63,919 bases of DNA, filler included, from Klebsormidium nitens (GCA_000708835.1; 6 parts of 6 records of this genome joined end to end with filler, not necessarily neighbours in it); one strand, 5' to 3'; numbered from the whole stretch's first letter, positions 26,256 through 44,965 are shown. A program made the numbers and translations. Notes: generated from the letters alone by a model not told the origin.

Positions 26256-26256
26256 T

Positions 26257-27830
26257 GGACCACACCTTGTATACGGTTCTTCTTAGCGAAGAGCCGAATC
26301 CTTTATAATTATTGGCAACGTGTGGTCCATCAGGACCAGGCCTGCTTGCCAATTGCTTCTGAAGGGCAGGGATGGCCGGTCTACCTTACGAGATAGCTGG
26401 ACCACACCTTGTATACGGCTTCGCCCAACAAAGAGCCAAATCCTTTATAATTGTTGGCAACGTGTGGTCCATCAGGACCGAATTTGCTTGCCATGTGGTT
26501 CTGGAGTTCTGAATGGCCGGAATGGCCGGCTTGACTTACGATTGGATGGACCACACCTTGTACGAAGCTCGGCCAGGCAAACGGGGGGAGTTTATAAGAA
26601 TCTTTGACAACGTGTGGTCCAACGGGACCGGACCAAAACTGCTTGCCAATTGCTTCTGAATGACCGGGATGGCCGGCCAGACTTGCGAACTTTGGAACGG
26701 GCTGGACCACACCTTGCATATATTAACTTTTGCTAGCAAAACATCAAGCTTCCTAAGAATCTTTGACGCGGCGTGTGGTCCAACGAGCCCAGACCCCAAA
26801 CTGCTTGCCATATGCTTCTGGATGGTCGGCCTGACTTGCGATTGGGTGGCCCACACGTTGCTAGAAGCTCGGCCAAGCAAAAAGGGTATCTTTGACGACG
26901 TGTGCTCAAGTCCAGATGGTCGGTCTGACCTTCGAAGTCTGAAACGGGCTGGACCACACCTTGTCGAAGGCTTGGCCCAGCAAAGAGCCGGATCCTTAGT
27001 AATCATTGGCAACATGTGGTCCATGAGGGTCCACCAAAACCGCCTGCCATATGCTTCTGAATGGCCCGGATGGCAGGGTCTGACTTACAAACGGGGCTGA
27101 CTCGTGATTGGCTAGACCACACGCTGCAAATGGCATTCTCTAGCAATAGAAGAGAGTTTCATTACATTGTTGGCAAGGTGTGGTCTAGCTTTTGGCAGAT
27201 GCCGCAACGCTAGTCTGAATTTCGAGAAGGGTTGGATCACACCTTGTATAAAGTTCGGCCAAGCAAAAGAGCTGGGTTTCTAAGAACCATTGACAGGGTG
27301 CGGTCCAAGAGTTTCAAGGGCCAAACTTGCTTGCCACATGCTTCTGAATGGCCGGGATGGCCGGTCTGACTCGCGAACGAACTGAGTGGACCACACCTTG
27401 CATGAGGCTCTCCCCAACGTTTCTTAAGAATCATTGACGACGTGTGGTCCAACAAGCAATCCTGCTTCGCCACATGCTTATTTCAGATGGCCGGGATGGC
27501 CGGTTTTGACTTACAAAACAGAACAGTGGTTGGGATGGCCGGTCTGACTAACGAGCGAATCAGCCGACCACTCCTTGCACGAGGCTCTCCCTAACGTTTC
27601 TGAAGAATTACTGACCACGTGTGGTCCACCAGATAAAACCTGCTTGCCACATGCTTCTGAAGACCTAAACAGCCGGTCTGACTTACGAACCGTACCATTG
27701 GACCACACCTTGCACGAGGCTCTCCGTAGCATCTTCTAAGAACTATTGACCCCGTGTGGTCCAATCATGACAAAGTAAAACCTGTTTGCCACATGTTCTA
27801 AGTGGCCGGGATGGTTGGTCTGACTCATTG
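26257..27830. repeat. Tandem satellite, about 11 units of ~130-165 bp, each with GGACCACAC...GTGTGGTCC inverted arms
   Basis: ggaccacac(cttg)-like motif near 26257, 26399, 26547, 26704, 26849, 26951, 27115, 27233, 27389, 27567, 27700. Each is followed by a gtgtggtcc-like motif, then ctgcttgcca..tgcttctgaatggccgggatggccggtctgacttacga. The array abuts an N-gap. Confidence 0.9.
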
Positions 27831-28304
27831 CTTCTGAAAATGTGGGCTGGCATGGGGGTCCAAGTGTCACCAAGGTCTCATATATTTTGCTGAGTCACTG
27901 GTTCTGAGTTCTCTTCAAGACTTTGCTGGCCATGCTATGCATTGTCAGCCTTGCGTATAGTTGGCATGAGTGAATTGACAGCTCACTCGGTCATCTTTGA
28001 CACTTCTAGAATTGAAAGATGTTCTAGAATCCAATCATGCTCAAGGTTTGCTGACTCCGGCTGTGGCATCGGAAATTGCTCACCCCACTGAAATTACAAT
28101 GTTATTGCAAAGGTCATCCGGCAAATGAAAGGAAGCCATCACCCTGAGTGTGCCGCGGTAAGCTACAATATTCGGTCCAGATATCGTCAAAGCCGGGACC
28201 TCCACTGAACGTATAACTGCTGTAAGATCTGACACACCAGTGGCTATGGAGTGCATTGAAGAGAACGCACCTGACATTATTCTCAGCTCGCTGCCCGCTC
28301 GCTG

Positions 28305-32088: not shown

Positions 32089-35000
32089 CAAAACAGCCGG
32101 ACGGATCAGAGGATAGTGGTCCAGAAACGATCAATTGGTTACCCATGTAGCTACAGATCCTTTGCAGCCCCCCGGGCTGGTTGTAGAAGCAGCGAAAGCT
32201 GTTGAAGTACTGGTGGTCCAGTGTTACGTCGGCGGCGCGAGCACATGGAATTAATGCTTGGAAGGATGGATTGGCGGGGCATGAGTTGGGGAAAAGCGTC
32301 CTTCCTGCAATAAAAAGACACGGAAAAACTATTTTGGACACAGGCCGCTTAGCCAACACTCAGATCCTTGAGGGGCATTAGGGCATGATGTGCGTGGAAT
32401 TTTAGGGCCGGGGCCTGCATAAGCGGCATGCAATGCTCTTTCGCTTTCCTCTCCTATGAAAATTTGTGGCCTCTTCATCGCAGGTGCGTGACCTGGCGCA
32501 AAAGGGAGAATTCCACATCCCTTCGAGATTGTCTCCTTCAGCTACTGTGCTGGGCCCGCCGGGTTGGAATACAGGGTCCCCGGCTGTAGCTACTAATAAG
32601 TCAAAATCCAGTCTTCGAGCTCACTCTTACACTGCTGGTCCCACTGTTGAAGAAATGAGCATCAAGACATAAAAAGTCCAAAAACGTCATCTGGGCAGGA
32701 GAATAGGCTCGCTGTGCACGTGTTCCCGGCGGCTAATTCGCGGGAGTCAGCACAGTAAAGCAACGAACTCAGAAGCACACGGTCCGGAGTGTAGGTACAG
32801 GTCCCGATCACTCCACGCGGATTGACAATCGCGCCGTTGGTGGCAGCGTACTCGCAGACCAGTTGCGTTAACAGGTTCCTATCCAGATCCGTGACAGGAC
32901 AAAGGAACGTGGATTCACCTGCATACCCGGATGAAAATAAGATTGAAACGGCAGTTGCTGCGTGTGCGCTCTTCGGGACTCCAACCACACGTCTGGAGAC
33001 GAGGCCGGAAGTTTGAAGTATCGTTCGTTGATGTCCTGGCATATCATAGCGAGCCTCGAGCGTTCTAGCTCTTGAGAATATCAACTATTCGGCCCGGTTT
33101 TTCGGAAACAAAGTGAAAAAGACGCCGGTGGCTCACCGGCCTCCAGACCGCAGCAGCGGTGCATTTGCGACTCCACTTTTGACTAATGAAGCGGGGCTCC
33201 GAGCACTTGGGTTGCGGTTGCGGTCTCGAATACCGTTTGATCGTCCAATTCCGATTTTGCGGCCGCAATCGTAAAACAGCTTTCCGTGAAGCTGACCATG
33301 CATTTGAAGAGCGACTCACCCGTTAGTGGCCGCCTCGCCGTCGGCGGAAAGGTCAACAGCTGCGTTGGAGCAGGCGTCAGCGCAGCAGTCGGAGCAGGCA
33401 TCGGGGGCCCGCTAATTCTGACTGCGCAAGGGTACGAAAGTGCATTTGTGAGGCACGTAAATCCGGCCGTTGATCATGAACGTTGATTTGTTCAAGAATT
33501 TCGGGTTCAGGCTTTTCGTTCATTACACCGCCACTATAAATGATAATAGCCCGGTTTAAGATCGTTGTGAGGCCACTTCGATCTTAACCCTATTGAGGTT
33601 TTTAGTCTATTTTGGTCTTGAACGTTGTGTCAGACCATTTTGATTTTAAAAGCTGAATTCTGAGAGGAAAACAACCTCAGCAAACGATCTTAAATCGGGT
33701 GTTGATTCATAGTGCGCGGCATGATCAAGTAGCACGTTTTCTAGGAAAGACCAGAACGGAAGAGGAGGATCGGAGGATGACATCCAGGGTCCCATATGGT
33801 CGAGAATCAAACAGGGTTTGACCCGTTATATGGTATCCAATTGGCCTGGCACTCCGGCTGGCCCTCAAATGTTAACATCTGCACCTATTTAACATGAACC
33901 ATACATAGCGTTTTCGACTTGGGATACTATTTATGGTATTTACTAGCATGAACCTGTACGGAATTCATTTAACCAGATTTTCTCCTTCTATAAGCTGAAC
34001 ACGGATCTGAAATCTAGACTCTTTCGAGAAGCAAGGCTCACTTGGGCAGTGGGAGAAGTGTCCCCCCGTGAAAGCACCAGTTGCGTCGTAAGTGCACAGG
34101 GGAGATTCTGCGCTTGATCCGGCAATGGCGTATATACAGCCAGTGTCCTGATGGAAAGCGCTCGCGTTCGCGAAGTTCCGCTGTACCGACGAGGGGCAAG
34201 AATTGGGGAGGGTGCTTCCTGTTCCAGATAACATCGTCATACTTTAGCTCCAGCAAAGTACTCGCAAGACGACTAGCTAGTAAAATTAACCCTAGAAGAA
34301 TACGAGAGGTTTTTGCAAAGCAGGATCGGGGACCAACGTTTGTCGAGAAGTCTATTGTACCTTGTTCAATCCAGGTGGACCAAGCTTAATAAAGGTCCGG
34401 CAGCAATGACTTCGGGGTACTTCCGATACATCTTATCCACTACCTATGCCAATTCACCCATTTTTTGGAACTCGGAAACGTCTTGCACTCATGCAAAGTT
34501 TATTTGAAGGCCGAGGGCCCTGCTTTCTCCTTTCATAGGACATCTAGGTAAAGTTGGAGTGTTGCCGGTCCGGCCACCTTCACTATCCGGTCCGAAATGT
34601 GGTTCGTCCGATTCTCTACAAAATCTGAATTTCGCCCTTTTTCACCTGGGCAGGAGACGGGGGGTGTTGGTGGAGTCTCTCCAGGGACAGTGACGAGAGC
34701 ACCGTATGGGTAGTACGTGCAGACCGTTAGTGACATGGCGCGGGCCCCGCCGATCGTCACGTTGTAGGAACAGTAGAAGGTGGTCAGCGGGTTCGAGGAC
34801 CGGTCGATAGAGGGGCACATGGATGCGATCATACCTGCACGTTAAGATGTTGCCCCGCGGGATAAAAGATTCTGCAATAGCTTCCGTGGGCGTTTGCGAT
34901 GAGTTTGCCGTGTGAAATCCAAACCGGAGCTTCGAAATCGTTTCTGACGCAGCCGCGCAATACAACGAGCCTTGAACGTCCTCTTGAATAAACTTCGTTT

Positions 35001-37708
35001 CGACCCGGGCTCACGAAGAAGCTTGAATTAAGTGAATCCACATGAGTGACTCCTCGGCCTCCGGACCGCAGGTGCGCGCTGCATCTTAGGCGACTCTGCC
35101 CTCTCAGTTAAGCGGGACTTCCGAACAAGGTCTGCGGTCACACCGAACCCAACAGTCGTCCAATCTTCCAACCTAGAAGAGCTAGAAAGGGAGCTGCCAG
35201 ATCCGCCAGCGTACACGGCGAATCTGATAGCCATTAATACAAAGTGCGACTCACTCGTCAGTGGCTGTGGCGTCGGAGTAGACGTCGCAGGCACGCGGAT
35301 GCTCACTGCGCACAGGTCGAAGGCGCACTCGTGAGGGACAAACTATAAACGTTTCGTTGATCCTCCGAATGTTTACATTTTCAGCTCCAATGCTCTTGTC
35401 GGATAATTTCAAAATTACCTTTGATTTTTGGAAGAGACAAGATCGACCTCAGAAGAAAAAGGGAGCATTCAAGGTCTACGGCAATCCAATTGTTGAGCCG
35501 GCTTACCTGTGGAGTATCAAAGTTGGCCACTCGGATGGCCTTCAACTCTTTCTCGTTGCCAGTTGACGACCAATTTGATCTTCTAGAACGACTCTACCAC
35601 GCCGCTTAACAGTATCATCTGAATTTGTGAGGAAGCCTCATTATCATCTGGATTTGTAAGGAAGCCTCATGATCACATTCGTCAAGTTCCCAATTATATT
35701 AAGATGCATTTGAAATCGAGGCCAGTGTTTTGCATTGCAAGTGCAGCGCTCACTCGGGCAGTCCGGGAAGTATGTCCCGAGTGTCGCGCCAGTCGCATTG
35801 TAAGCGCAACTGAAAGAAGCCCCGCTTGGTGCGGCTAAGGCGTACACGCAACGAGACTGCTGGTAGAAAGCGCTCACGGTTGCAAAGTTCGGCTGAACCG
35901 ACGCGGGGCAAGAGTTGGGGTCGGTGTTCCCTGTGAAAGGAGAATTCATCAGCATACATTAGCTTTAACATATAATCGTAACAAGATTGGTAGGACCCCT
36001 AGAAGATTTCCAGAGGAATAGGCTCGTAAGGCAAAGTTTGAGACCACCGTTTCTCGGAGATCACGTCCCTTGAGCAGATCCCCTCTCGGCTCTCGAAACA
36101 TCAACAAATCAACACGAGATCATTTAGCCGAATGACCGAAAGAAGTTTGTGCCGGAAATCGTCCTACAAACAAGCAAGATAAGCGTTGAGTACTTCATAA
36201 TGTCCCACAAGACGAACTGAAAGCTGCGAACTACCATTTCTGTAATGGTCTTATGGGTCCAGATTTCATGAGAGGCGCCTGCAAAGACATGGGAAAGCTT
36301 CTATGTCCGATTTTTTCAGTGAAACACGTCAACCTTAATCTCTTTACAAACACGTTTCACAATTTAGGTGGACTAAAGGGCTCCAGCAATGGCTTCAAAG
36401 TACTCTCAGGCTAGATTCAATCATTCACAACCTCTGCTAAGTCACCCGCTTTCCCACGCAGTGACGTTCCGCACTCATTGCTCATTCAAAGGCCCGAGGG
36501 CCCTCATTTGTCCTATTTCAAAAGACGCCTAGCTAAGAGTTGGATATCAGCTGGTCCGGCCATCTTCTCAATACGGTTCCAACCTTGATTGACTGAGTCC
36601 AATTATATGCAAGATTGGGACGGGGCCTCTCTGACCTGGGCAGGAGACCGTGGGTATCGGTGGAGTCGCTCCAGGGGCAGTGGCCGTGGGAAACAGGACG
36701 GGAGTACCGTTTGGATTGTACGTGCAGACCGTTAGTGACGTGGCGGGGACACCGCCGATAGTCACATTGTAGGAACAGTACACGCGGGTCAGCGGGTTCG
36801 AGACCATGGCCAGATCAGTAGGCGCGCAGACGGACGCAACCATACCTGCACACGGCCAGCAGCGAACCTGAGATCAGACATTTCGGATACGTGAAGTGAA
36901 ACTTCACCGAAGTTCTCAAATCACTCCAAATTGGTAGTTCATGATTATGGCTTAAAGTTCGCGTCCAGATGTCAAGTCCGCAAGATTTTCGCGCACCCAC
37001 TTAGAGTCTGCGTTGGTGACGCAGTTTGCATCAGCTTCCGATGGGCCACTGCGGTAGTTTTGCCAGGGAACCGGATTTCCGTCACCAAAGCGACGGAAGC
37101 GGAGTCCGTCCCCAAAGCGGTTGCAGAAACCTGAATGCGGAAGTGCAAACGTGTCAGTGCTTCGTGAGTGCCATGGTTCCCGTGAGGAGCGCGGCAACGA
37201 GCACCAGAAACAAACGACTCTGATGTGAAAGGGCAGAAAGGCCGCTGCTGCTCACGTTCTGACAACTCCCAGCCGTGGTAGCCCTCTTCAAAGTAGTTTT
37301 CGAAGTGAACGTCCCTACTCAAAGGAGCACCGGGGGCTTCGGAAGATCCTTTGAAGAGGAGCTGCGGGAAACAGATCTTCTGGGAGGCCAATCTAGGTTC
37401 GAATACTCTGCCCAACACGTCCAACCCTGTCGTGCTTAAAATTCTGAAGACAGATTGGTAATTACTTTTTCAGTCTGCACGCGCAGGACATTGGGCGAAA
37501 CTTGTTTCTATTTTTAGAGAGGAAACCTTTCAGAGAGCAAGCCACATGCGGAAGAGAAAGCTGGGAACAAGGAACAAGCGTCAAAAGTAGGTCTCCGTTT
37601 CCAGAGCAAACCTGCGTATCAGCACCACCACTTTTTACTTACCTTTGCATTCTGCAGAACGAGGCAGAGTAGGCCGAAGAGGCCAAGAAGGGACAACTTC
37701 GCCGCCAT
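32089..37708 (-). CDS. Secreted modular protein: signal peptide, RKLMQ pro-region, then three (Cys-module pair + Pro/Thr linker) blocks; 10 exons recognised, terminal exon unresolved
   Basis: Exons: 37708-37643 (MAAKLSLLGLFGLLCLVLQNAK|gtaagt), 37130-37001 (...HRKLMQTASPTQTL), 36845-36636, 35930-35754, 35305-35255, 34834-34646, 34218-34042, 33421-33320, 32918-32691 (donor reads AT), 32304-32089. Internal exons are multiples of 3 in phase 1-1. Module pattern: CP..x..CxY..x..CxY...G...CP. Confidence 0.75.
33550..33699. mobile_element. 150-bp MITE-like element in an intron
   Basis: cccggtttaagatcgtt (33550) and aacgatcttaaatcggg (to 33699) are inverted repeats with 1 mismatch, extending imperfectly inward (tgagg/cctca). 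No target-site duplication seen. Confidence 0.55.
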
Positions 37709-40383
37709 TGTTGCAAGCAGATGCAGGAATTGCGGACGGCTGGATTTCACTGGCACCTTGCTCGCGGTTCGAAGAAAGTTCAATCAAAAGTTGTAACAGA
37801 GGTGAGGAGGAAATAAAAGAAGGTGGTCGTGCGGGTTGAGCTTATACCAGATTGTAGACAAGCTTTCTGAGTCTTTAGAATGTGGACAGCAATTAGCTTG
37901 ACTCGACGACAGACTTGATCCGTGATACCTTTCAAGCGGCTTGTAAGGCGAATCAACTCTGCGATTACTTACGAGAAGTTTGCGGCGCTTGCGTCCTCGA
38001 AATAATCCGAGGTATTCTGTCGAGTCTTCCGCCGTGCGCCACCTTGACCTCAAGGCTTTGAAGCGAGGGGTGCTATGCTTCTTTTCAACGAGAGAAGCAG
38101 ACGTGTTACATCCACGGAAACACTTGCCCCGGCCTAGGAGTCAATCTGGGCGGCATGAACTGTTGGACGAAGGGCTTTCAAAGAATTAGTTGCGTACTAC
38201 AATCTCCAAGGTCGGATTGGCAGTCCTTTCACTTCATACGTCCGGCTGCAAGGATCCTCACGTCGATATACAACGTTGGACTTTGAGCTCGTTCGAAACC
38301 GGGCCCCGAGGATTGCCGGCTCTCCAAGGGGTTTGGTGCAAAGCTTAGCAGTGTTTACTTGAGCCAGCCACTCCCCAGTTGCCCTGCCGTTCCTTCCCCA
38401 ACTTGTTTCGCAATCGGTGTTTCTATGTGAGGTTACGGTATCATTTGCGGTCGTACCTACACTATATTAACCGGGCCTTGTTGTGTTGAGACTCTGAACC
38501 AAAGGCCTTCGAAGCTAACAAGGAGATAACCCTTCGCGGGTCTCAGTATACATGCGCTGCCGGGAAAAAAACGTTGCCTAATGAAGTCGTCGTCACGTGG
38601 TGACGACCCCCAACGGCCGATTAGATCGCCTGACGGCCTGACGGATTTCTCGCTCTGCAAGCTAGTGGCCTTTCCCTAGTGAAGAAACATCGGCACTGGG
38701 CTACGATCGCCCATCGAACCGAGCCCCGGCCTCCAACCACAGGCTCTACCTGTCCGGGGCTTAGAAATTGCCACGTGTCCTGGTAATCAGAGTTGCATCT
38801 CGCACTGACGCCTCGAAACCTCGCGGCCCAACTCTGTGCGTGTCACGTGGCCGCGAATTCGTTTGGCTGCTGCTTTGGGGCGCCCTCGAGGCGCGCCACC
38901 TCACGCCAGAGTGCATTAGGGGCACAGGCTTCTCGTGATTGCTCCTGCGCAGATTGAATTAGCAGTGACGTCAAGCTGACCGACTGTCTCAGAACTGGGT
39001 AAGGGGGCATGTTGATTCGGGAGTAAGGTGCTAACTTTGCAGCGCGAGCGGCGCGCACCGCAATCCCAGGACCGGCGGCCTTGTCTTCAACCCTCTCCGA
39101 TTTTACCTTTGCAAAATTAAACGTTTGGTCATCGAATTCACGCCTTCCGGCGGCTTAATTGTTCGGCCGTCAGCTGAGTGCTCCAGCGTGGCCGGCGCCG
39201 AGGCAAACCGGAGCCGCTCGTCTGGATCTCCTTCCAGGCCACAACCTTTCATCTTCGCAAAAACAGGCGCAGGCCCCCTCTATCTGCGGCAGCTGCGCGG
39301 TCCGACTCGCGAGTCTTCGAGCTTTTTCACCTCGCGGCCGCGCGCTCGCCAGATAAGCGGCCCGGCCGGCCACGCAACGGGGATTCTGAGACATCGGAGG
39401 GACAGCTGGTGCATGACGCTGCCCCCGGAACCTCCAAACCCTGGATTCTCGCTTGCGCGCAGCGCGTCCGCAGCCGATACGAGCGCGCGGCCGTTCTGCT
39501 TTTGCCATCTCCGCGCGCGCGCAGGGTCAACNNNNNNNNNNNNNNNNNNNNNNNNNNNNNNNNNNNNNGCATCTTCTCGCCACCGTTAGTGCCTTCCGCA
39601 GCCTCGCCACCACGAGCGCCACCAGTTGTTGCGCTCGAAACCTTTTGCTTCCGCTGTTTGAAAAAACGTTTGGCGCGGCGTGACGTGGCGTTTTGCCGGT
39701 GTCAGAAAAGTCGCTCCAAAAGCAGCCGCGCGAGGGTACCATACTGGTGTCTGGCGGTGCTTCTTCAGGTCTTCAATAACTTGTGCTGTAAGACGTCCGC
39801 CACTGTTGATGAAGGGCTTTTCGCCCTCAGTTTTCACAAGAGTCCATGCATTTAATCAAGCGATTGTATACAAGGCTGATGGGATCAGCACGGTTTGTGA
39901 GCAACTTGTCACCGGAAAGCTTCAGGAAGACGTTGGCAAAGAAGGTGTCGTAGAAGCACTGTCACGTACAAATGAGAAGAATGCCTACTCCATATAAAGG
40001 ACAAAAGCGTACAGTGAATTCACGGAGGACCTTACGGCTTGGTAGGCCTTTGGACAGGCGAGGCTGGTGTCCACTTAACGTCCATTTGATCTTAAGGAGA
40101 CAGCCCGATCTTAACCAGGTATTTACTAAAGCCAGAATGGCGAGCTACTACGGTCGACTCCTCATTACTCGGTTTTGACCAAGGCCTGAGAGCTCACAAG
40201 AAAGAGACGAGTCTATACTTTTCTCCTCAATCAAGTGTTCTATTCAGAGCCGCTGAGGCGTGCTCGAAGCACCGCCACCTTGCACGCTTCATGGCATGTA
40301 CGTGGCGGAATCTGCTCGGACTACCTACCCTTCCTCATCTAATAGCCTGGGACCTGCTTGCTTTATCCCCAAATTCTCGCACT

Positions 40384-43280: not shown

Positions 43281-44965
43281 CAGGACTGTTGGCGAAGCCA
43301 CCAACAAACACTTCGCCGCCAATCGGAACAGCAATTCCTAGACGATTGCAATCATTTGCAGTCGTAACAGTACTGGAGGCGCCACAAATGGGCTTCAGAC
43401 CAAATGTCGTCATTCCCAATTCCGGAAGACCTCCTGTTCATCCTGCTCAAGAATAAGGGGTGCTTCCTACGGTTTCAATTTTTGTGAGAATCAGGGTCAA
43501 GAGCCGGAACAGGCCACTCTGGCTGGCTTTCGATCTTCCGCGTTCAAGACCGATTCGAGCTCCGTTTTTGGAGTGGGAGTCAAGCATACAATACCCGAAC
43601 GAGACTTCGTATAACTGATCGTAAGCACGCAAAGCGGGCGGCTGATTTGAACCCACACAGATACACGAGAAACATGAGACGATCTAACGTGTCAACAACT
43701 TTCCTCTTTCGTGCACTTAGTCGAGTCTGAAGCAGGTAATCATTTTTCTTAGGATTAAACCCTGATTCAACACCGCACTCTCTTCATCGGGCACAAAGAG
43801 ACACGACGATTTTGTGGACCAAGTTCGTGTATGTGGATCGCTGAACGGGAACTTTCAAGTTGATGCTCTAGAGTTACAATCAATCTGTTCCATATCGATA
43901 CAACTCATGTTTTTGAGTTCCTCGACGGTGGGTGACGAGGGCCGATCTCACAGCGCCGCTGCTCACTCGTTGATTTTGGAGTGGGCGTCGGGGTGGGCAG
44001 GGAGGGCGCCGGGACTCCGCCAACGGATGCTGCACAGATTCAAAAGGGGGGCCAGTGATCTTGTTACTCACTGACCCGGAACAGCGCGTGGATTTTGGAA
44101 ACTGACCGCCGCCGCTTTCGGTGTAGGTTTCGGAACCGACCCTCTGGAGCATTTAGAAATGGTTCCCTGCAAACCGGTCGCGACTCGAACAAGCTAACCC
44201 AAAAATATTCGCAGGGTGTGTTTTCTACAAGCTTCCTTGAGCACCCTTTTTTCCCACATCTGTGTTTTGCAAGATCTGTACTACAATGTTGAAAGCTTGC
44301 CTTAGAGCCTTGATTAAACAGGCGACTTTCGTGGAAAATAGATCAAGAACTCCCTGTCTGTCCGGGAACCATGGCGGCAGCCATGGCGAAACCTTAAAAG
44401 CGCACGCACGAAGCCGTCCGAAAATTCGAATCGAACCGACGGCTTTGGAGCGCTGTGGAAAAAGCTGAAACGCCAAAAATGGGCGCGCCTGATCATGTAA
44501 GCGGCATGAGAATGTCGTCAGTTACGTAAGTTCGTCTCAATGCGTAAGGAGGCCGCAACAGGCCACCGTCATCTGGACTGAAAAAAAAACAGTATACGAA
44601 AATCACTCATTCCAGACGCTTTCGTTCCCATACGAGACACAGCAGCTTTTATCAAGCATTACTGCCATGTTCAAGAACACCCCATTTGCATGCAGAAGAA
44701 AAGCTCTTCACCAATATAGGCACCCCCGCTCACCAGCACACCCGCCGTAGAAAGGGGCCGGATAGGAAGATAACAGAGAACCGTCTTGTGTGTATAGGCA
44801 GGTCTCTTGGGACACCGAAAACCGTGGATCGGAGTAGGAGCACATGAAGGTGGAGGACTGATAGCTGATGGACGTGTTGCCCGGGAAGTAGGTGCTTCGC
44901 AGAAAGGCAATCACATCTCGATTCTCCAAAGAACGTTGGTAGAGGGCACGAGTCAACAGCCGGCG
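43281..44965 (-). CDS. Probable upstream exons of the second modular gene, truncated by an assembly gap
   Basis: Phase 1-1 exons 44029-43967 (SVGGVPAPSLPTPTPTPKST|gtgagc) and 43433-43281 (tentative, weak acceptor). A Cys module ends at 44734 (CSYSDP..TCLYTQDG..GCA|gtgagc), with its DSCP start in a different frame (possible frameshift near the gap). Confidence 0.5.

Follow-up and report, generated by a model that had tools for sequence, protein, structure and literature searches.

Does the minus strand at 37708-32089 of a scaffold from the charophyte alga Klebsormidium nitens carry a genuine gene for a secreted protein built of repeated four-Cys modules, and, if so, how did the gene grow and what could its product do? 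The scaffold (18.7 kb) belongs to a window of 63,919 nucleotides, the whole stretch of DNA that was analysed, which consists of six records of the K. nitens genome (GCA_000708835.1) joined with filler. A first-pass annotation made without knowledge of the organism had described an unannotated green-lineage gene in which a signal-peptide exon and an exon encoding RKLMQ precede two kinds of Cys module, M1 and M2, in the order M1-M2-linker-M1-M2-linker-M1-M2. While the green-lineage guess was borne out by the organism, the word "unannotated" was wrong: GenBank already has a model at this locus (KFL_009970010), namely the hypothetical protein GAQ92372.1 (P0001; 339 amino acids). We found the locus to be a real multi-exon gene that is poorly modelled in GenBank, and its reading as a secreted, modular four-Cys repeat protein was supported by the exon anatomy, the module pattern and the signal-peptide pattern.

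The exons were read on the minus strand from 37900 to 31900, and their boundaries were checked by script. The first exon, e1 (37708-37643, 66 nt, phase 0-0), contains the ATG and the signal-peptide core MAAKLSLLGLFGLLCLVLQNAK and ends at the donor AAG|gtaagt; it is identical to residues 1-22 of GAQ92372.1 and homologous to the N-termini of four paralogues (P0002, P0003, P0007 and P0008). The second, e2 (37130-37001, 130 nt, phase 0 to 1), has canonical borders (acceptor cag|GT, donor AA|gtgggt) and encodes the end of the signal peptide and a pro-region with AVAHRKLMQT (...FPGKTTAVAHRKLMQTASPTQTL). Unit A then comprises the module exons M1a (36845-36636, 210 nt, four Cys, sequons NVT and NGT) and M2a (35930-35754, 177 nt, four Cys, PNSCP...CVY...CAYNATG...CP) and the Pro/Thr-rich linker exon L1 (35305-35255, 51 nt, SIRVPATSTPTPQPLT), and unit B comprises M1b (34834-34646, 189 nt, 68% amino-acid identity with M1a), M2b (34218-34042, 177 nt, 55% identity with M2a) and the linker exon L2 (33421-33320, 102 nt, RISGPPMPAPTAALTPAPTQLLTFPPTARRPLT). 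A divergent third pair, M1c (32918-32691, 228 nt, six Cys, donor position G|AT) and M2c (32304-32089, 216 nt, five Cys, canonical acceptor, donor G|gtgagc), lies beyond. All module and linker exons (51-228 nt) were revealed to be phase 1-1 without exception, and the boundary check thus agreed with the proposal of one four-Cys module per symmetric exon. The acceptors are (c/t)ag and the donors gt(a/g)ag-like, with the M1c donor as the sole exception.

The proposed exon order is accordingly present in the DNA, except that the last M1-M2 junction has no GT donor: the M1c site reads CCAG|at, versus CCAG|gt in M1a and M1b. Reading through from M1c adds DDVFGLFMS and reaches a stop at 32664-32662, nine codons on. 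Neither a phase-1 GT nor a strong GC donor was found between 32691 and this stop, and the only phase-1 GT upstream, the weak site GACC|GTGTGC, was rejected since its use would delete the fourth Cys. Because the M1c donor lacks GT and no usable alternative precedes the stop, the M1c-M2c junction is not a canonical splice. The donor loss leaves M2c with no canonical phase-1 feeder, and this exon may therefore be a stranded relic. Reading through from M2c itself stops at 31993-31991, and a tblastn search with the family proteins gave no exon downstream of it.

Within the six-frame translation of the scaffold, the regular expression C..CxY..CxY..C gave seven matches, all on the minus strand, as compared with a mean of 0.01 and a maximum of 1 in 300 shuffles. 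Two modules outside the reach of this expression bring the scaffold total to nine. Since the columns C, CxY, CxY and C are invariant across the nine aligned modules, M1 and M2 are regarded as two subtypes of one module. The exons have a GC content of 59% and a third-position GC content (GC3) of 64%, as against 47.5% GC in the nine introns (155-705 nt). Between units A and B, the ratio of nonsynonymous to synonymous substitution rates (dN/dS) was 0.66 for M1 and 0.53 for M2 with every Cys and Tyr kept, indicating that the constraint on the modules is relaxed but real.

GAQ92372.1 contains e1, M1a, M2a, L1, M1b and M2b exactly, so that six of the ten exons are common to both models, and it lacks e2, L2 in frame, M1c and M2c. 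In place of e2, it has an exon 2' at 37361-37256 (LLFKGSS...ELSE; located by tblastn of P0001 and splice context). Because both run from phase 0 to 1, e2 and exon 2' are mutually exclusive. No counterpart of exon 2' was found in the paralogues. In contrast, e2 is 56-73% identical to the stretch that directly follows the signal peptide in P0002, P0003, P0007 and P0008, which have an e2-like signal peptide and a FRGETTAVAHRKLMQT region, and AVAHRKLMQT is invariant in all five sequences. The signal peptide and FRGE(T/S)xAVAHRKLMQT pro-region that were taken as a mark of the family are encoded by e1 and e2, and only GenBank's version of the present gene lacks them. Furthermore, only the joining of e1 to e2 creates a V-x-A at positions -3/-1 (AKVSA|TALG), as is likewise seen in the paralogues (VFA|, VLA|). 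As for L2, the GenBank model uses an internal acceptor at 33357 and another frame, and its protein ends at 33319 (TVDLSADGEAATNG). In the frame of the first-pass annotation, L2 reads RISGPPMPAPTAALTPAPTQLLT... and shares 61% identity with the P0004 linker RNISGPPTPAPTPALTLAPTQPLTG, and the L2 acceptor region shows 79% DNA identity to the acceptor region of a linker in the neighbouring paralogue described below. Judged by these sequence comparisons, the exon model of the first-pass annotation improves on the database entry in two respects, e2 and L2, and several parts of the public model are probably incorrect. A similar fault may affect a paralogue: the C-terminus of P0002 (...PLTSESHFK) resembles the translated start of the conserved linker intron of the window (gtgagtcgcac...), and its annotated end thus looks like intron read-through.

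The duplication mode could be read from the DNA. Units A and B lie approximately 2.0 kb apart and align in three blocks of 71-74% identity, the first of which (71% over 364 nt) extends from M1 through about 150 nt of the next intron. Since the identity continues through the intron, exon sets were duplicated together with their introns as tandem segments, and the duplications stayed in frame because every exon is phase 1-1. The first-pass annotation had called the layout classic exon shuffling; this was not supported, given the intron identity, and no module was found in an unrelated protein context, the family itself being the only one. Unit C and the modules of the neighbouring paralogue were too diverged for DNA alignment with these units (about 34% amino-acid identity). 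Directly abutting M1b in the L1-M1b intron, and sharing its frame, a degenerate pro-region (34835-34961, minus strand; FRSSGLDFTRQTHRKRPRKLLQ... / …FRSSGLDFTRQTHRKRPRKLLQNLLS…) is closed by a stop, and the family proteins align through it. This remnant suggests that unit B derives from duplication of the 5' part of a gene. The gene has grown by tandem duplication of a unit of about 2 kb (M1 exon, M2 exon and linker exon), the third unit being old and divergent, with its M1 donor site lost. It provides a clean plant-lineage example of modules that correspond one to one with phase 1-1 exons and were multiplied by segmental duplication.

To assess the distribution of the module, 1.84 billion representative proteins were searched at a cut-off of E≤0.001 with a profile built from the nine modules, as the first-pass annotation had proposed. 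Nine proteins were obtained, of which seven are hypothetical proteins of K. nitens (GAQ92372, GAQ78235, GAQ92222, GAQ78234, GAQ92373, GAQ93287 and GAQ80625) with E-values from 4e-63 to 3e-13 and two to five matching stretches each. The other two matches, a pseudoscorpion retroelement polyprotein (P0005) and a WD40 protein (P0009), were judged spurious. When the family alignment was used to query 5.8 billion 90% clusters in a word-indexed search, the same seven proteins came back, each as the single member of its cluster. Scanning of JGI metagenome contigs with a degenerate pattern from this alignment gave 66 pattern matches, none of which was confirmed. Five of the paralogues are distributed over four other scaffolds, on one of which KFL_000100010 and KFL_000100020 are neighbours. 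The family is thus small and species-restricted, being confined to K. nitens within what was searched. A suggested resemblance to small secreted Cys-rich proteins of basidiomycetes found no support, as neither the profile search nor the word-indexed search, which returned K. nitens proteins only, gave a fungal relative.

The statement that the module cannot be assigned to a named family was upheld. No match at E≤10, and nothing above noise, was obtained in Pfam for any module reading frame or family protein, and the best match of the module profile in a sequence search of the PDB was the IL-2 receptor beta (E=0.19), which was taken as chance. With M1a as query, the ESM Atlas gave no usable match. 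An AlphaFold model of M1a built on the nine-row alignment (predicted local distance difference test score, pLDDT, 59.5) contains, at low confidence, a beta-hairpin with strands at 19-29 and 32-42 and one CxY motif on each. The proposed structural check with AlphaFold and Foldseek provided no structural relative, since nothing was found at E≤0.001 when this model was compared with the PDB; weak NTF2-like rows in the Foldseek output were rejected because they stem from the low-confidence hairpin. The seven annotated members thus make up a family around a previously uncharacterised domain, for which a profile could be made.

The N-terminus encoded by e1 and e2 shows the n-h-c pattern of a signal peptide, whose approximately 25 residues would direct the protein into the endoplasmic reticulum. 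For the RKLMQ motif that follows, the proposal of a pro-region site of the green lineage is a reasonable one: RRLL/RKLL-type motifs are described as cleavage motifs in land-plant type-1 pectin methylesterases (PMEs), whose pro region is removed in the Golgi by a subtilisin-like protease, and the listed variants comprise RRLL, RKLL, RRML, RKLK and similar (PMC4008260). The K. nitens protein resembles these enzymes in having an N-terminal pro-region after the signal peptide and a conserved R-K-L-x motif ahead of the putative mature part, and differs in that its pro-region is only about 35 residues long, is not a domain like that of PME inhibitors and has Met at P1. The invariance of AVAHRKLMQT, despite only about 50-65% identity among the modules of the paralogues, argues for a functional site. 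In view of the resemblance to the PME motifs, cleavage after RKLM is a guess open to testing; the short, highly conserved propeptide ending in HRKLM|Q would probably be removed, on the way through the secretory system, by a subtilase or site-1-protease (S1P)-type protease.

The mature protein would then be a string of modules of 55-75 residues with four conserved Cys (CP..CxY..CxY..G..CP), which could form two disulfides, and the low-confidence model would place the CxY motifs on the two strands of the beta-hairpin. The CxY motifs are immediately followed by sequons (NVT, NGT, NAT, NAS), which the paralogues have kept, suggesting N-glycosylation at CSYNVT and C(T/A)YNATG. The linkers consist of 64-70% Pro, Ala, Ser and Thr with non-contiguous AP, TP and SP, and these dipeptides number two to four in each short linker and 25 in a 164-residue linker of the neighbouring paralogue. 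Such non-contiguous dipeptides are hydroxylated and O-glycosylated in green plants. K. nitens sequences were included in a phylogeny of prolyl-4-hydroxylases (PMC11252719). With its signal peptide and its Pro/Ala/Ser/Thr-rich regions of repeated AP/SP/TP, the protein shows the sequence features expected of arabinogalactan-protein (AGP)-like hydroxyproline-rich glycoproteins (HRGPs); SPP+ motifs, by which extensins are defined as SPPP(P), were found in none of the linkers. The Pro/Thr/Ala-rich spacers between the M1-M2 pairs may thus be glycosylated, with the modules as disulfide-bonded knobs between them.

This architecture is best compared with the chimeric HRGP/AGP-like wall proteins of the green lineage, such as the volvocine pherophorins and the PAC-domain AGPs, which likewise have a signal peptide and globular Cys-containing domains alternating with Pro-rich AP/TP/SP spacers and form lineage-specific, tandemly expanded families. 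The K. nitens protein differs from them in that its Cys module has no detectable similarity to pherophorin, PAC or any Pfam domain, and that it has neither SPPP extensin motifs nor an evident glycosylphosphatidylinositol signal. Animal Sushi/CCP modules are about 60 residues long, have four Cys and a CP start, and occur in strings with one symmetric phase 1-1 exon each. The K. nitens modules agree with them in size, Cys number, CP start and exon phase, as an analogy of gene architecture only, whereas their motif is CxY rather than YxC..GY..W, the motif order differs, and no module matched the Sushi model PF00084 (consensus C-P..Y-x-C..G-Y/F..C..W..P-x-C) at E≤10 or gave a structural match. In streptophytes, the plant cysteine-rich repeat secretory proteins (CRRSPs) with DUF26 domains are described as secreted proteins of tandem Cys-rich modules expanded by domain duplication (PMC6368629). 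To that extent the K. nitens family resembles them; the DUF26 Pfam model, however, gave no match to its proteins, and no homology was detected.

Taken as a whole, these features point to a secreted, modular protein that is probably processed at its propeptide and glycosylated, and for which we infer a structural or adhesive role in the wall or extracellular matrix as the most likely one. Several points weigh against this. The P1 residue is Met, and RKLM is not among the variants in the flax PME table (PMC4008260). The structural models are poor, with a pLDDT of 59.5 for one module and 35.7 for the whole paralogue P0002. With six and five Cys, a broken junction between them and not a single sequon, M1c and M2c may mark a part of the gene that is decaying. 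GenBank's model differs in exon 2 and in the L2 acceptor, perhaps because it drew on further evidence. Finally, a short-protein search (38-120 amino acids) gave no RNA-derived fragments in the protein collections.

The alternative that survives best, though unlikely, is that of a defence or recognition protein, whose modules, stabilised by disulfides, would serve as lectin-like or antimicrobial binders and evolve fast against microbes, the spacers only presenting them. It would account for the rapid divergence of the duplicated modules (dN/dS 0.5-0.66; M2a and M2b 55% identical), for the species-restricted, tandemly clustered multigene family and for the secreted Cys-rich repeat architecture. 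However, searches of Pfam, PDB sequences and Foldseek revealed no similarity to lectin, defensin-like or carbohydrate-binding families, and the dN/dS values are below 1, not above. Distinctly less probable is a decaying tandem copy, largely non-functional and weakly or not expressed, as the lost GT donor after M1c, the odd Cys count of M2c, the stop-containing remnant of a pro-region that immediately precedes M1b, the possible frameshift in a module (Mx) of the neighbouring paralogue and the lack of transcript-derived fragments in protein collections might suggest. Against it stand the exons from e1 to L2, which are all open with canonical sites and raised GC3, the retention of all Cys and Tyr in units A and B with dN/dS below 1, and the orderly stop that still follows nine codons after the lost donor. 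A polyprotein precursor, whose linkers would be cleaved after the RKLM cut to release independent four-Cys peptides as signals or antimicrobials, is very improbable, since, despite the strongly conserved propeptide with its basic motif and the repeated, similar-sized Cys modules with linkers between, no cleavage motif, whether conserved and basic or of another kind, is recognisable in the linkers, whose lengths are very uneven (17 to 165 residues), M1 joins M2 directly through a single junction-spanning codon, and the composition of the spacers is closer to that of glycosylated rods than to that of sites for processing.

To return to the processed, glycosylated wall protein, the full combination, in which the module is a structurally new extracellular domain that arose, or diverged past recognition, in the Klebsormidium lineage and multiplied by duplication of symmetric phase-1 exon sets, and in which an S1P-type subtilase cuts at RKLM, is put forward as a tentative and rather doubtful proposal. 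If true, RxLx pro-region processing of wall proteins would occur in a streptophyte alga whose divergence predates land plants; the family would also be tied to a terrestrial, filament-adhesive lifestyle. The K. nitens genome serves as a reference for studies of how plants moved onto land, and species-restricted secreted wall proteins are candidates for building or sticking filaments in air-exposed habitats. The practical yield is a corrected gene model: the GenBank annotation of the two adjacent genes has missed the pro-region exon, frameshifted a linker and truncated both genes. The main value of the analysis lies in this re-annotation and in a definable new domain family, and general concepts are left unchanged. 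A literature search for the locus tags and in the supplements of one K. nitens RNA-seq paper yielded nothing of use.

The upstream tandem paralogue, KFL_009970020 (GAQ92373.1, P0006), lies on the same strand at 44965-40387 and is cut by the scaffold edge. It consists of the module exon Mx (44965-44734), which is cut by this edge, the linker exons La (44029-43967) and Lb (43117-42623, 495 nt, tandemly repetitive and Pro/Thr/Ala-rich), the module exons M1 (42334-42161) and M2 (41530-41348), and a C-terminal exon (40761-40387) encoding 125 amino acids with 14 Cys. Its module and linker exons are likewise all phase 1-1. The GenBank model begins at an internal Met and has missed the two upstream exons, La and Mx (43967-44965, minus strand). 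In Mx, the DSCP motif and the CSY..CLY..C part lie in different frames, which may be due to a frameshift or to an undetected boundary. The C-terminal exon (GC3 0.78), which is absent from KFL_009970010, encodes a second Cys-rich domain, for which no Pfam, PDB or ESM Atlas match was obtained. That the two neighbours form one gene was rejected, as the upstream one has its own stop after the C-terminal exon and the downstream one its own start and signal peptide.

Between the two genes, a segment at 38861-38914 (minus strand), about 1.2 kb upstream of the start of KFL_009970010, shows 79% protein-level identity to the N-terminal extension of P0007, indicating that the paralogous loci have upstream sequence in common; this extension is probably mis-annotated. 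An assembly gap, a run of N at 39532-39568, lies in a GC-rich (56-59%) stretch of the intergenic sequence. Within KFL_009970010 itself, the M2a-L1 intron contains a 29-nt unit tandemly repeated 2.2 times with 91% matches (35613-35675). An Rfam scan of the scaffold gave no match. At the scaffold end, a degenerate satellite (26256-27840) consists of at least 11 copies of units of approximately 145-150 nt with 60-85% identity, and it yields spurious repetitive open reading frames (GHPGHSE...).

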